A DNA stretch of 63,284 bases, filler included, from Octopus bimaculoides (GCF_001194135.2; 3 parts of 2 records of this genome joined end to end with filler, not necessarily neighbours in it); one strand, 5' to 3'; shown: positions 28,398 to 34,635, numbered from the whole stretch's first letter. Numbers and translations: made by a program. The notes: generated by a model from the letters alone, not told the origin.

Positions 28398-28543
28398 TTA
28401 AAGCTTTTTTAAGCAACAGTTTGCACCATTGCTACATGGAGGACCCATAAGGGGTATCCAGCCTGCTTTGGCACAAGAAACTGTCAAACATCCAACAATC
28501 ATACCTACAAGGTTTTTGGTAACGTCTGGACTCAAGCATTCCT
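28398..28543 (-). CDS. Coding exon 4: (K)[47 protein letters not shown], beta-defensin-like Cys spacing
   Basis: Acceptor ctatttctgatttacag|AG, phase compatible with exon 3. Six Cys ending in CC plus a basic tail. TAA at 28400-28398. Confidence 0.88.
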
Positions 28544-29640
28544 CTGTAAATCAGAAATAGAATTGGTAATTAACAGGTAGATATATTAATTAAAAGTAAC
28601 ATTATGTATTTCTATCACTAATTACATACTAATCATAGCAATAACTACAGACAAAAGACAAAACAAATTTACTAGTGGTGGTGGTGGGAGGGGGACTTTC
28701 AGCTTTACTATACGTTTGTATATTTGAATGCAAGATGGTCATTGGCTAAGTCATTAGAGAGTCAGATATATTCCGTGCTGCATGGAATTTGGTCAGTGAA
28801 CAGGTCATGGTCTCAAAGCGACGAAAATATTTTGGAAAATTAAATTTAAATGTTGAAGTGAATCTAATGGTTTTTGTGTGTTTCTTAAATGCGCTGAACA
28901 AATTGGCTTCATAATTGTTAATATTAACATCATTTAAATTCTAAATGTATTTGGATAGGGTGGTAGTAAAGCATCTTCCAAAGTACCTGAATGCATACAT
29001 ATGTTGTGAGAATCTACTCTTAAACGGATCTTTAGTAAGTCCTTTATAGCTTTTTGCATCATTGTTATTTACAACAGAGTTTTTAGTTCAATAAACTAAT
29101 GCCTTAGACAAACACATGCTACTGAGGAGGCAGATATTGAGTTGGTCACTGGTATCACATCTGGTATCATATCAAAATCCCATCTGGTATCATATTTAAT
29201 GTCATATCTGGTGTCACATCCAATACTTCAAAACCATGTCAAAACAAAAGGAACTTACTTTGTGCTGGTGTTGTTGGTGCTGGTGCTGTAGTTGTTGGAA
29301 CAGTTGTTGGAACAGTTGTTGGAACAGTTGTTGGAACAGTTGTTGGAACAGTTGTCGGAACAGTAGTTGGTGCTGGGGTTGTTGGTGGTGGTGCTGCCTT
29401 TTCAACGCAGTGAAGTACGTTGTTTATAAAACACATTTCTACCAAAAGTTCATTGTTACAGTTTGGTGCAGTTTTGGTGCATGACATATTTGGCAAGTAA
29501 CAACTGGGGCCTGAAATATAAAAAAAAATAAACATCATCATTACGGTCATCATTGTTGCTATCATCATCATCATCACTAGCACCACTAACTTCTACCACC
29601 ACCATCATCATCACCACATTACTACCATCATCACCATAAC

Positions 29641-29675
<35 letters not shown>

Positions 29676-30226
29676 CTAGCACCACTTAACTCCCACCACC
29701 ACCACCACCACCACCACCATCACCACCATAACCATCATCATCACTACTACCACCATCACCACAGTTCTAAGTTCAAATTCTGCCAANNNNNNNNNNNNNN
29801 NNNNNNNNNNNNNNNNNNNNNNNNNNNNNNNNNNNNNNNNNNNNNNNNNNNNNNNNNNNNNNNNNNNNNNNNNNNNNNNNNNNNNNNNNNNNNNNNNNNN
29901 NNNNNNNNNNNNNNNNNNNNNNNNNNCTCCTTTTTTTTCTTTTCAATTTTATTACCCTTGTTTACACGCAAAACCCTCACAACTACACACACACACACAC
30001 ACACACACATTGTTTTCTCCTGTGCTGTCCATAATGCTTTTCTTCTTGTAAACCCATGTAGTTAATAAAGAAATTTTTATTATTATTATTATTGATTGTT
30101 ATTATTATTATTCAGTAGTTTTATTTTTATAATGTGCTTTCACTTCACTACCGATCGCTGATCTGTGTGCCTTGGGTATGTGCTGTGGTTTGCTGTGATG
30201 CTCTTATGGTTACTGTATTGAAATTG

Positions 30227-30279
<53 letters not shown>

Positions 30280-32147: not shown

Positions 32148-33471
32148 CGTATGTATGCATATATGTGTATATATGTGTGTGTATATTTATATATAATATA
32201 TATGTGTGTATGTGTGCGTGTATAATGGGTGATAAAGCGCTTGTACATATGTGGGATAAATAATTAGCAAGTGGTGCTGAGAGAGATCAGAATCTTAAAT
32301 TCCTTCGTCAGACTCAGTTTGTCCAGAAATAGAAAAGTTGGCAAGAAGAAGAAAAACTGAAAATCAATGTGTATGTGCATATACATACATACATACATAT
32401 ATATACATGCATATACATATATATACATGCATACATATATATACAAACATATATACATGTACATATATACATACACATATATACATAAAAACATACATAC
32501 ATACGTACATACATACACACACATATATACATACATATATACATATATATTCATACACACACTTATATACATGCATATATACATACACACACATATATAC
32601 ATGGATACATATATACATACATATATATACATGCACACATATATATACACACACATATACGTACATATATACATACACACACATATATACATACAGACAT
32701 ACATACATACATACATACATACAGATATACATTCATACACACATATACATACATACATATATATACAGATACACACATACATACATACACAAACACATAC
32801 ATACACACGCACACACATACGTACACATATGTACATACATGCATACATACACACATACGTACACATGCACATCACATACATACGTACATACATACATACA
32901 TACTTACATACATACATATGCACACTTATTGAATTTTGGTGGAACGTTTGCATAAAAGCTTCTGCCAAGTGCAAACATAACAGGCCAGATATTGTTATTT
33001 GGGACCGACAAGACAAAATACGAACTGTCACAGAGGTCAGCTGCCTTGCCAATGTGGATATCTCTTGAAAAAACAAAGAGATAGAGGATAAACAAAGAGA
33101 TAGAGGATGTTGACTGGATGTTTGACTTTCATCACTCTTGGTACATGTCCTCTGATTGACATCCAAACACTCTGAAATATTCATATTGGAGCTTCCAGCA
33201 TGAATGCCAAGCTATACGGTATGTCATTTCCAAATTTCTAGCAGAATGAATTGCAAAAAATTAAAAATATAAAATAGCGACAATTTACCCATTGCACCCT
33301 GTGTGTANNNNNNNNNNNNNNNNNNNNNNNNNNNNNNNNNNNNNNNNNNNNNNNNNNNNNNNNNNNNNNNNNNNNNNNNNNNNNNNNNNNNNNNNNNNNN
33401 NNNNNNNNNNNNNNNNNNNNNNNNNNNNNNNNNNNNNNNNNNNNNNNNNNNNNNNNNNNNNNNNNNNNNNN

Positions 33472-33509
<38 letters not shown>

Positions 33510-34550
33510 TTATAGATGTTTCCAATCTAGTTTGGATTCTTTGCCATCAAATTTGAATTCTTTGCAATCAAATTTGAATTTTTCAAAGAGACTTTGTAAG
33601 ACAAGTTAAAACAGAGAAAACGGTCAACAGACATGCGCTGAAGTGTTGCAAATGGTAGAAAGTAGGAGTCTTCATCCTCGCAAGAATATTCAATGACCAC
33701 AAATCAATTCAAAGCTAGTTTCTCGAAATTGGTGCTGAAACCTTGAAAACAAAAGAGTTAAACTACATCAGCCGTAAGGGAATACAAGTCTATCTTATCT
33801 AACTCGTCCAGTAGAGCCCACTGTTACTCGAACTTCAATCTAACCCCAAGCTTGGGACAACAAACTCGGGTTGGATAAACTCGAATAGTAAGCTCTTTGC
33901 TCTTTATAACCGTTTTATGAAGTCACCTTTTCGTTAAAAAATTGTTCAATTTGCATCTCTTCAAAGCGAACGAACTGGTTCTTTTAAGGTCACTCTTGGG
34001 TAAAGTTCGAATAGAAAGCTTGAATAGCATAGTTCTCAAATGAAAACTTTGCAGCTATCAAGAACTTATGAGCATTACTTTTGCATAATACTATTATTAA
34101 TAGCAATTCACCATACGTAGGCATAAAGGAAATTATACTAATCCTGATATAACGACCTGCCTGAATGCATCCATGTGTCATTTAAGACACGTGCGTGCCA
34201 TGTACAATAGACAGTCTAGTTAAAAGACATACCATGGGGGGAGGGAGGATGTAGCATAAAGAACAACACTCACAACTGAGGGAGCTTCTATGTGGTCATT
34301 CAACCAGCTAGAAATAGCAGCCAAATCTCCTTCAAATCACTCCCTACCATATTGAATCAACAACAACAGCAACAATAACAGCCAGCAGTTTGAAAACAAT
34401 TTACAACATAATTAGATTAATAAAATATGGAAAAAAAACCCCAATCAATCAATAAAGATCAATAAAATAATTCTTACAACTTTGACATTTGACCAAAGAC
34501 AGGAACTGTAGAACTGCCACAAAGAGTAAGAGCGTTCGATTCTTAACCAT
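28398..34550 (-). CDS. Spliced 4-exon gene for a 195-aa secreted cysteine-rich modular protein (signal peptide + 2x novel 6-Cys module + Thr/Pro mucin-like linker + beta-defensin-like C-terminal module)
   Basis: Manual splicing: exons 34550-34478 (73 nt), 31077-30961 (117), 29510-29259 (252), 28543-28398 (146) total 588 nt = 195 aa + TAA, with no internal stop. All introns are GT-AG and phase 1. Protein: [195 protein letters not shown]. No transcript evidence available. Confidence 0.9.
29259..29510 (-). CDS. Coding exon 3: Cys-rich module 2 + Thr/Pro linker with (PTTV)6
   Basis: Acceptor ttttatatttcag|GC, donor CAA A|gtaagt. 252 nt, phase 1-1. Lies inside supplied ORF 29239..29586(-). Confidence 0.92.
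30961..31077 (-). CDS. Coding exon 2: Cys-rich module 1, (C)[38 protein letters not shown]
   Basis: Acceptor ttttcttttctcctcaag|GT, donor ATG T|gtaagt. 117 nt, symmetric phase 1-1, open, and clearly paralogous to the first half of exon 3. Confidence 0.9.
31145..31460. repeat. Compound (TACA)n/(CA)n microsatellite, representative of very many (TA)n, (CA)n, (TACA)n, (GATA)n, (CAT)n, (AAT)n and (CAC)n tracts across the window
   Basis: Direct inspection. Most N gaps are flanked by such tracts. Confidence 0.95.
32290..33190 (+). mobile_element. R4/Dong-type LINE relic in intron 1, split by a large (TACA/TA)n expansion
   Basis: [29 protein letters not shown]…[11 protein letters not shown] at ~32930-33065. 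Same family as 13745-14990. Confidence 0.7.
34478..34550 (-). CDS. Coding exon 1: signal peptide [24 protein letters not shown] + first base of split Cys codon
   Basis: ATG in strong Kozak context (agaaccATGG). Basic n-region followed by a hydrophobic core. Donor AGT T|gtaaga, phase 1. Confidence 0.85.
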
Positions 34551-34604
34551 GGTTCTTATAAAAGATTCTACAAATCTGTTATGTAATTTCTTGTGGCACT
34601 TAGT

Positions 34605-34635
34605 AAATGATATGGTATGTGAGGAGTCTTATATA
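34605..34635 (-). promoter_or_regulatory. Candidate core promoter of the 4-exon gene: TATA box (TATATAAG, 34635-34628) + Inr-like TCATTT (34610-34605)
   Basis: The Inr A (34608) lies 27 nt downstream of the first T of the TATA box, giving a ~58-nt 5'UTR before the ATG at 34550. An alternative AG acceptor at 34569-34568 would instead imply an upstream non-coding exon. Confidence 0.55.

Follow-up and report, generated by a model that had tools for sequence, protein, structure and literature searches.

A probable unannotated octopus gene for a secreted, cysteine-rich modular protein with relatives in cuttlefish

Among the known systems closest to the gene considered here are the big and beta-defensins, whose genes have in common a phase-1 intron directly before the cysteine-rich exon and whose canonical big-defensin members are present in cephalopods (Gerdol et al. 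2020, PMC7203481), and the peritrophin/mucin-type (CBM14) proteins, which are secreted, are encoded by symmetric exons, and combine tandem, small, aromatic-rich modules of six cysteines (6-Cys modules) with a Thr/Pro spacer that can be O-glycosylated. The gene lies on the minus strand, at positions 28,398 to 34,635, of a stretch of Octopus bimaculoides DNA (GCF_001194135.2; 63,284 nucleotides (nt) in all, filler included, referred to as the window, with positions counted from its first letter). We consider it likely that its four exons form a real, intact, unannotated gene for a secreted, disulfide-rich modular glycoprotein of 195 amino acids (aa), belonging to an unnamed family of octopus and cuttlefish; the gene is new to annotation, having been missed by that of the octopus genome. 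With the defensins it shares a two-part secreted product, several similar cysteine spacings and a C-terminal six-Cys exon that ends in CC and stands behind a phase-1 intron; the N-terminal part of big defensins is a hydrophobic beta-alpha-alpha-beta domain, whereas that of the octopus protein is made of Cys modules, with neither prodomain nor dibasic site. With CBM14 proteins it shares the layout just listed, whereas the Cys spacing of its modules is quite different and Pfam gives no CBM14 match.

Splicing the four exons out of the minus strand (28300-34800 read) gives a 588-nt coding sequence (CDS), that is, a 195-aa open reading frame (ORF) closed by TAA. The coding part of exon 1 (34478..34550, 73 nt) carries Met1-Ser24, including a 22-aa signal peptide, and the first base of the Cys25 codon; it is followed, through a phase-1 GTAAGA donor, by intron 1 (31078..34477, 3400 nt as scaffolded), which contains (TACA)n and (TA)n microsatellites and two N gaps. 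Exon 2 (30961..31077, 117 nt, phase 1-1) encodes module 1 (39 aa, Cys spacing 2/6/6/7/7) and is separated by intron 2 (29511..30960, 1450 nt as scaffolded, with a repeat resembling a short interspersed nuclear element (SINE), trinucleotide microsatellites and an N gap at 29787-29926) from exon 3 (29259..29510, 252 nt, phase 1-1). The latter encodes module 2 (29510-29395, after the T at 30961; 39 aa, Cys spacing 2/6/6/8/7) and then the Thr/Pro linker (29394-29260), within which a 12-nt repeat of 6.8 copies at 29290-29370 encodes (TTVP)n. Beyond the gap-free intron 3 (28544..29258, 715 nt), the coding part of exon 4 (28398..28543, 146 nt including the TAA at 28400-28398) supplies the 48-aa C-terminal 6-Cys domain, with spacing 15/4/12/5/0. 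All of these features are on the minus strand.

The three junctions (34478/31077, 30961/29510 and 29259/28543) are all GT-AG and all phase 1; the donors read, in order, GTAAGA, GTAAGT and GTAAGT, and polypyrimidine tracts precede each acceptor (..ctcctcaag, ..tatatttcag and ..gatttacag). In both modules the first Cys codon is split by the upstream intron (AGT T|gtaaga...aag|GT for module 1 and ATG T|gtaagt...cag|GC for module 2), and the C-terminal exon is likewise entered through a phase-1 intron (CAA A|gtaagt...cag|AG GAA TGC). A long genomic ORF (29239..29586, 115 aa) covers exon 3, and no other exon lies in such an ORF. Upstream of the start codon, which stands in the context AACC-ATG-G, reading of the sequence places a candidate core promoter with a TATA box, TATATAAG, at 34628..34635 (minus strand), an initiator-like (Inr-like) TCATTT whose A at 34608 is 27 nt downstream of the TATATAAG box, and a putative 58-nt leader that holds no upstream ATG. 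At the other end an AATAAA polyadenylation signal (28373..28378, minus strand) follows 20 nt past the stop codon, and it is the sole AATAAA within 600 nt of the stop.

The predicted protein consists of the 22-aa signal peptide, the residues QS, module 1 (39 aa), module 2 (39 aa), 11 aa, (VPTT)6, 10 aa and the 48-aa C-terminal domain, which ends in CC-LKKL. It has 19 Cys in total, of which 18 would remain after the predicted cleavage, and no second hydrophobic segment among its 195 residues points to a transmembrane (TM) or glycosylphosphatidylinositol (GPI) tail. The signal peptide, judged by rule, has an n-region with K3/R5 and a 14-residue hydrophobic core, and V at -3 and C at -1 fit the signal-peptidase rule; in the cuttlefish (Sepia) relative introduced below, the place of the predicted cleavage motif V-K-C|Q is taken by V-G-S|Q, so that cleavage would expose Gln in both. 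Thr and Pro make up 72% of the linker (19 T and 14 P of 46 residues), and its (TTVP)6 tract comes from the 12-nt unit repeated 6.8 times with a 95% match. An earlier note on this DNA, made from the sequence alone, had proposed this gene, and the spliced reading agrees with it in detail: four exons joined through phase-1 GT-AG junctions, exact to the base, into 195 aa, with introns of 3400, 1450 and 715 nt; only exon 3 visible as a long ORF; a Kozak ATG, candidate TATA/Inr and AATAAA; the order signal peptide, two 6-Cys modules, Thr/Pro linker and 6-Cys domain ending in CC, with 18 Cys and no TM or GPI tail; and cleavage after VKC to expose Gln, to which the aligned cuttlefish site now adds.

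The two N-terminal modules are paralogous. In BLOSUM62 local alignment they score 79, where shuffles that keep the composition give 22.7 +/- 4.6 (none of 20,000 reaches 79), and all six Cys, Tyr5, a Lys, A-P-N-C, C-F and a Glu are aligned between them. At the nucleotide level their identity is 0.50, 0.53 and 0.32 at codon positions 1, 2 and 3, and different codons are used at 7 of the 14 conserved residues; this pattern indicates conservation at the level of the protein and not a recent DNA repeat. The C-terminal domain, which has a net charge of +2.7 and is rather hydrophobic, is unrelated to the modules by the same alignment and shuffle comparison.

To search for relatives we built a module profile from pieces exactly as they stand in the window, without the split first Cys (alignment A1; the same pieces served for AlphaFold2). 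An exhaustive hidden Markov model (HMM) search of this profile against 1.84 billion representative proteins returned two matches, P0170 and P0171. The top one, P0170 (E 5e-17), was rejected as spurious: it is a bacterial repeat protein of 1339 aa, and its 13 matches cover no more than 12 columns of the profile. P0171 (E 8e-6) comes from the cuttlefish Acanthosepion (Sepia) pharaonis and is deposited as CAE1274490.1 / UniProt A0A812CNK3, an "unnamed protein product". Word-indexed searches of 5.8 billion proteins gave only low-complexity matches to the Thr/Pro linker with the full-length protein, and no matches with a query lacking the linker. A coverage control with the retroelement ORF at 25528-25905 (minus strand) returned RefSeq proteins of Octopus sinensis and Penaeus and many eukaryotic contigs from ENA, which indicates that cephalopod proteins are present in the collection and that the window's own genome is apparently absent (best identity 77%).

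The 90% cluster of P0171 also contains P0172 (289 aa), which has a signal peptide and four modules of the form C-x2-C-x6-C-x6-C-x8-C-x7-C, in every one of which YPNC and C-V-E-K/R occur, followed by a Ser/Thr/Pro linker and then by a C-terminal CC domain (C-x15-C-x3-C-x14-C-x4-CC-LNK) extended by a 10-aa tail with one more Cys. This protein is encoded on contigs of about 940 nt from at least 16 SRA runs, and four of the accessions are cited in papers as RNA-seq of Sepia esculenta larvae or juveniles (PMC9538352, PMC10466719, PMC10571815, PMC10442824). In the S. esculenta contig a short 5' leader precedes an ORF without interruptions, an AATAAA stands about 30 nt past the stop, and the end is poly-T/A, features that identify it as a mature mRNA; the cuttlefish gene is thereby shown to be transcribed and correctly spliced in hatchlings. 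When the two window modules are aligned with the four of Sepia (alignment A2), all Cys, the PNC motif and the Glu two residues past the last Cys are invariant, octopus and cuttlefish modules being 24-49% identical. In tblastn against the 22-kb piece of the window that carries the gene, the cuttlefish module exons matched exon 3 at E 1e-10 to 2e-6. As judged from these alignments, the family is not confined to octopods and is common to octopus and cuttlefish.

The relation extends to the structure of the genes. The S. esculenta mRNA maps to an S. pharaonis genomic locus, L002 (CAHIKZ030001788.1), as seven exons, and the CDS rebuilt there (287 aa) occupies 1618-1705, 7722-7853, 8586-8717, 10982-11113, 14408-14608, 17599-17748 and 20677 onward, with all junctions GT-AG and phase 1. 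Each 132-nt exon of S. pharaonis holds one module, and the first Cys codon is split T|GT at four module junctions, as in the window. In both species the last module shares its exon with the linker, and the C-terminal domain is alone on an exon, the preceding phase-1 intron falling one or two codons short of the domain's first Cys. A TATATAAA box stands about 70 nt upstream of the S. pharaonis ATG. The deposited model CAE1274490.1 (10001-20705 of the same locus, 203 aa) omits exons 1-3 (1618-1705, 7722-7853 and 8586-8717) and starts with a spurious 36-aa peptide; it is mis-modelled, the S. esculenta mRNA supporting the seven-exon, 287-aa model, and it illustrates how easily such short multi-exon genes are missed. 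Between S. pharaonis and S. esculenta the ratio of nonsynonymous to synonymous substitution rates is about 0.49 overall and 0.30 in the modules (on few substitutions), and all Cys are conserved.

A0A812CNK3 and P0172 thus resemble the octopus protein in their signal peptide, tandem PNC modules, S/T/P linker on the exon of the last module and, with marginal sequence similarity, C-terminal 6-Cys domain ending in CC-L-x-K on an exon of its own, and their gene resembles the octopus gene in its phase-1 introns splitting the first Cys codon, its TATA box and its short 3' untranslated region. They differ in having four modules where octopus has two, and in an extra 3' exon that adds a 10-aa tail with a seventh C-terminal Cys. 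On sequence grounds the family plan appears to be a signal peptide, n modules of about 38 aa (C-x2-C-x6-C-x6-C-x7/8-C-x7-C, with invariant P-N-C), a Ser/Thr/Pro spacer, and a 6-Cys domain ending in CC-L-x-K. Because the module exons are of phase 1-1, the number of modules (two in octopus, four in Sepia) can rise or fall as exons are duplicated or lost, with the frame kept. Detectable relatives are confined to cephalopods, and the searches of Pfam and the PDB gave no family match, so the lineage restriction claimed in the earlier note stood; its description of the protein as unrecognised held in part, in that the family is unnamed and uncharacterised (we found no description of it in the literature), whereas the cuttlefish homologue, expressed in S. 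esculenta hatchlings, was already in NCBI and UniProt as the mis-modelled CAE1274490.1 / A0A812CNK3.

Several observations weigh against a functional octopus gene of this family or against parts of the model. Searches of the protein collection, which includes O. sinensis RefSeq, turned up neither transcripts nor proteins from the octopus gene itself, and none from an orthologue in another octopod, so that expression of the octopus copy is hypothetical. Between octopus and cuttlefish the similarity of the C-terminal domains is only marginal (local score 37, reached by 431 of 20,000 shuffles, p ~0.02), and tblastn of the cuttlefish exons against the 22-kb piece did not detect the domain; its homology rests mainly on position, exon structure and the Cys array (15/4/12/5/0 in octopus, 15/3/14/4/0 in Sepia), the points of agreement being an exon of its own past a phase-1 intron, a C1-C2 spacing of 15 and a CSxG..CCLxK ending. 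The gene model spans three scaffold gaps, that is, four contigs joined by scaffolding. Four of the five AlphaFold2 module models are of low confidence (52-61), and no fold match supports any binding function. Synteny is silent, the cuttlefish flanks (with a Peptidase_C48 neighbour) having no similarity to the 22-kb piece.

These points bear on the alternatives to different degrees. The reading in which there is no gene at all, and short ORFs in repeat-rich DNA happen by chance to join up as the four exons, draws on the abundance of short ORFs in this AT-rich, microsatellite-rich piece and on the want of direct transcript evidence. Chance would also have to produce paralogous modules with a conserved Cys scaffold, as well as a sequence, domain order, and intron position and phase that are conserved across orders with an expressed cuttlefish gene; module paralogy, the profile match, tblastn and the shared gene structure together effectively refute this reading, to which we give almost no credence. 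It is somewhat easier to imagine, and still quite improbable, that only the cuttlefish gene is functional and that the octopus copy is a non-expressed relic, a young pseudogene. No octopod member was found among 15 billion proteins including Logan transcript ORFs and O. sinensis RefSeq, a collection whose coverage of octopus RNA-seq is not established, and the octopus copy has just two modules and no tail exon; yet its ORF is intact over four exons, it has kept all 18 structural Cys and every splice site along with the TATA box and the AATAAA, and a short gene of several exons is readily overlooked, as the mis-modelled entry from S. pharaonis attests.

The scaffold gaps raise another possibility, that the gene is real and the 195-aa model incomplete, with one or more further phase 1-1 module exons of about 117-132 nt lying in the gaps of introns 1 and 2 and giving three or four modules. 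The N runs are at 31554-32008 and 33308-33471 in intron 1 and at 29787-29926 in intron 2, all at least 276 nt from the exons; since each lies wholly within an intron, every codon is free of gaps and the reading frame depends on the splice junctions alone. Their nominal sizes (455, 164 and 140 nt, estimated lengths only) leave room for an exon, an extra copy of a phase-symmetric module exon would keep the frame, and the cuttlefish protein has four modules. On the other side, the gaps are bordered by (TA)n, (TACA)n or SINE-like sequence, and microsatellite and SINE sequence is an ordinary cause of assembly breaks; tblastn of the cuttlefish module exons against the piece revealed no module-like coding sequence, not even a partial module, at any gap edge or in the readable parts of the introns; and the four visible exons already yield a complete protein with an even number of Cys. 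Of the alternatives we weighed this one deserves the most attention, and we regard it as unlikely. The scaffold itself is independently supported, because the order and strand of the exons are the same as in the cuttlefish gene.

The C-terminal exon could also be a diverged beta-defensin/big-defensin-type (trans-defensin) domain that shuffling placed on a new N-terminal scaffold, in which case the protein would be the precursor of a host-defence peptide. Its six Cys end in CC; its C2-C3, C3-C4 and C4-C5 spacings (4/12/5 in octopus, 3/14/4 in Sepia) are near the 3/13-14/4 of big defensins; its net charge is +2.7; and in the AlphaFold2 model a helix is followed by beta strands that carry Cys2 and Cys5-6. 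The beta-defensin or trans-defensin fold is a three-stranded antiparallel sheet in which C1 pairs with C5, C2 with C4 and C3 with C6; the model shows two or three strands besides the helix. A phase-1 intron precedes the Cys-rich exon, as in big- and beta-defensin genes (PMC7203481), a match of little weight because every intron of the octopus gene is phase 1. We built full-length and C-terminal big-defensin HMMs from 25 sequences of Table S1 of PMC7203481, and against them the window protein scored -12.6 bits (full-length model) and -9.5 bits (C-terminal model). In hhalign, the C-terminal alignment (anchored manually on the Cys, as the MAFFT alignment A3 misplaced them) matched the big-defensin C-terminal alignment with a probability of 0.3%. 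On these scores membership of the big defensins was rejected. The octopus spacing of 15/4/12/5/0 differs from the 4-14/3/13-14/4(7)/0 of big defensins at four of four spacings, the C1-C2 value of 15 lying outside the 4-14 of the 25-sequence set, while the cuttlefish domain (15/3/14/4/0) is closer and differs at C1-C2 only. The PDB sequence search was empty, and the best Foldseek defensin match of the C-terminal model was the alpha-defensin HNP4 (E 5.2, TM-score 0.38/0.47). The protein has neither the hydrophobic N-domain of big defensins nor a dibasic processing site, and a separate canonical big defensin gene exists in cephalopods. A defensin origin for the C-terminal exon is, in our judgement, a little less probable still than a hidden module, and the "defensin-like head" of the earlier note, which drew no support from the HMM and hhalign comparisons or from a Foldseek search that returned nothing at E < 1, counts as a lead more than as a result.

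We would go a step further only with marked reserve, to the proposal that the family is a cephalopod innovation in which a highly diverged trans-defensin exon was shuffled through a phase-1 intron onto an expandable array of 6-Cys recognition modules. In such a "targeted defensin" the surface bound by the modules would be microbial or chitinous, and a membrane-active C-terminal knot would be presented by the glycosylated spacer. We hold this to be doubtful, slightly more so than a defensin ancestry of the exon; if true, it would describe a new class of multi-domain host-defence proteins.

The reading that we prefer, an intact gene of an unassigned cephalopod family, leaves the identity of the domains to family and fold searches. 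Neither domain type can be assigned to a known Pfam, PDB or fold family. A Pfam scan of the window protein and the cuttlefish protein at E up to 10 gave only noise (EGF_alliinase, E 0.09; Dicty_spore_N, E 0.08), far below gathering scores, and nothing significant came from the PDB in sequence searches that used each domain singly, the profile of six modules or the cuttlefish protein in full. AlphaFold2 modelled the C-terminal domain alone with a mean predicted local distance difference test (pLDDT) score of 75.9, with a helix at 6-10 and strands at 14-19 and 41-46, Cys2 and Cys5-6 lying on the strands; for the module, the best model obtained with the six-row alignment (pLDDT 90.2) has a short helix and a beta-hairpin (23-29/32-37). 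Foldseek comparison of both models with the PDB, and of the module also with BFVD, a check that had been proposed along with the gene, gave no match for either domain type at E < 1, only noise at the level of beta-hairpins, domains this small being at the limit of the method.

The top PDB matches of the six-module profile were the fungal Zn2Cys6 zinc clusters GAL4, LAC9, HAP1 and PPR1, non-significant at E 0.2-4; Pfam Zn_clus gave no match, and the assignment was rejected. The likeness lies in the first half, where these clusters, like the modules, have C-x2-C-x6-C-x6-C with a basic residue after Cys3 and a Pro at -2 of Cys4, so that C-x2-C-x6-C-[KS]K..P.C in alignment A2 mimics the first half of a GAL4-type cluster. 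The second halves differ (x2-C-x6-C in the clusters versus x8-C-x7-C in the modules), and zinc-cluster proteins are intracellular and bind DNA, whereas the module Cys are expected to form disulfides and not to be zinc ligands, because the protein carries a signal peptide and would be extracellular. The resemblance is probably coincidence; metal binding by the modules is conceivable.

In the working that we propose, the protein would enter the endoplasmic reticulum and be cleaved after V-K-C, before Gln23, and its 18 Cys would form nine disulfides, three per domain. The Thr/Pro stretch may be O-glycosylated into a stiff, mucin-like spacer that would hold the N-terminal modules apart from the C-terminal knot. 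The tandem modules, rich in aromatic residues (conserved F/Y around Cys3-Cys6), may bind glycan, chitin or a microbial surface, with the number of such binding modules presumably varying by exon duplication, and the knot, hydrophobic, weakly cationic and fast-evolving, could act as a second functional end. An extracellular role at a surface or in mucus, cuticle or host defence is most likely, as a function that we infer. Together with the corrected S. pharaonis model, the octopus gene defines a coleoid-wide secreted family of two domain types that have no Pfam, PDB or fold assignment, and the family illustrates neatly how copy number changes when phase 1-1 exons are duplicated. Mucosal defence, cuticle and chitin biology, adhesion and venom in molluscs usually draw on secreted, Cys-rich proteins that are restricted to a lineage; orphan families of this kind are common in molluscs, and the significance of the present one, its function being inferred only, is moderate.

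The DNA around the gene is rich in repeats. A SINE-like repeat of a few hundred bases occurs at 23142-23398, 30306-30926, 42536-42794 and 43807-44063, and also at 22700-22819 and 27932-28139; the copies are 61-95% identical to the reference copy of each family, and each adjoins a microsatellite. Intron 2 of the gene contains one of them, and the gap at 29787 apparently truncates another. A 111-aa ORF at 27509-27844 (plus strand), some 550 nt beyond the poly(A) signal of the gene, matches HTH_28 weakly (E 0.002) ahead of a run of Asp; it appears to be what is left of a Tc1/mariner-type transposase, namely its N-terminal part, which binds DNA. Retroelement remnants occupy 25528-26255 and 23350-23625 (both minus strand), the element being interrupted by an N gap at 26027-26092. 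The 125-aa retroelement ORF has more than 100 homologues (E down to 3e-58), including O. sinensis LOC115230721 and proteins of Penaeus monodon, and in an ENA contig (L001) its homologue comes after an RVT_1 reverse-transcriptase ORF. Upstream of the gene, a 134-aa ORF at 36249-36664 (plus strand) contains three 66-nt tandem units (36430-36664, 75-80% identity) with a repeated AFYMPP..EP.R..WHRP.LDG motif and has no Pfam match, and a 209-nt unit is tandemly duplicated at 40428-40845 with 78% identity. The very end of the piece is a perfect, spacerless 160-nt inverted repeat (43936-44255; arms 43936-44095 and 44096-44255, 100% complementary) that includes a SINE-like copy; its most likely origin is a fold-back artefact of the assembly at the end of a scaffold.

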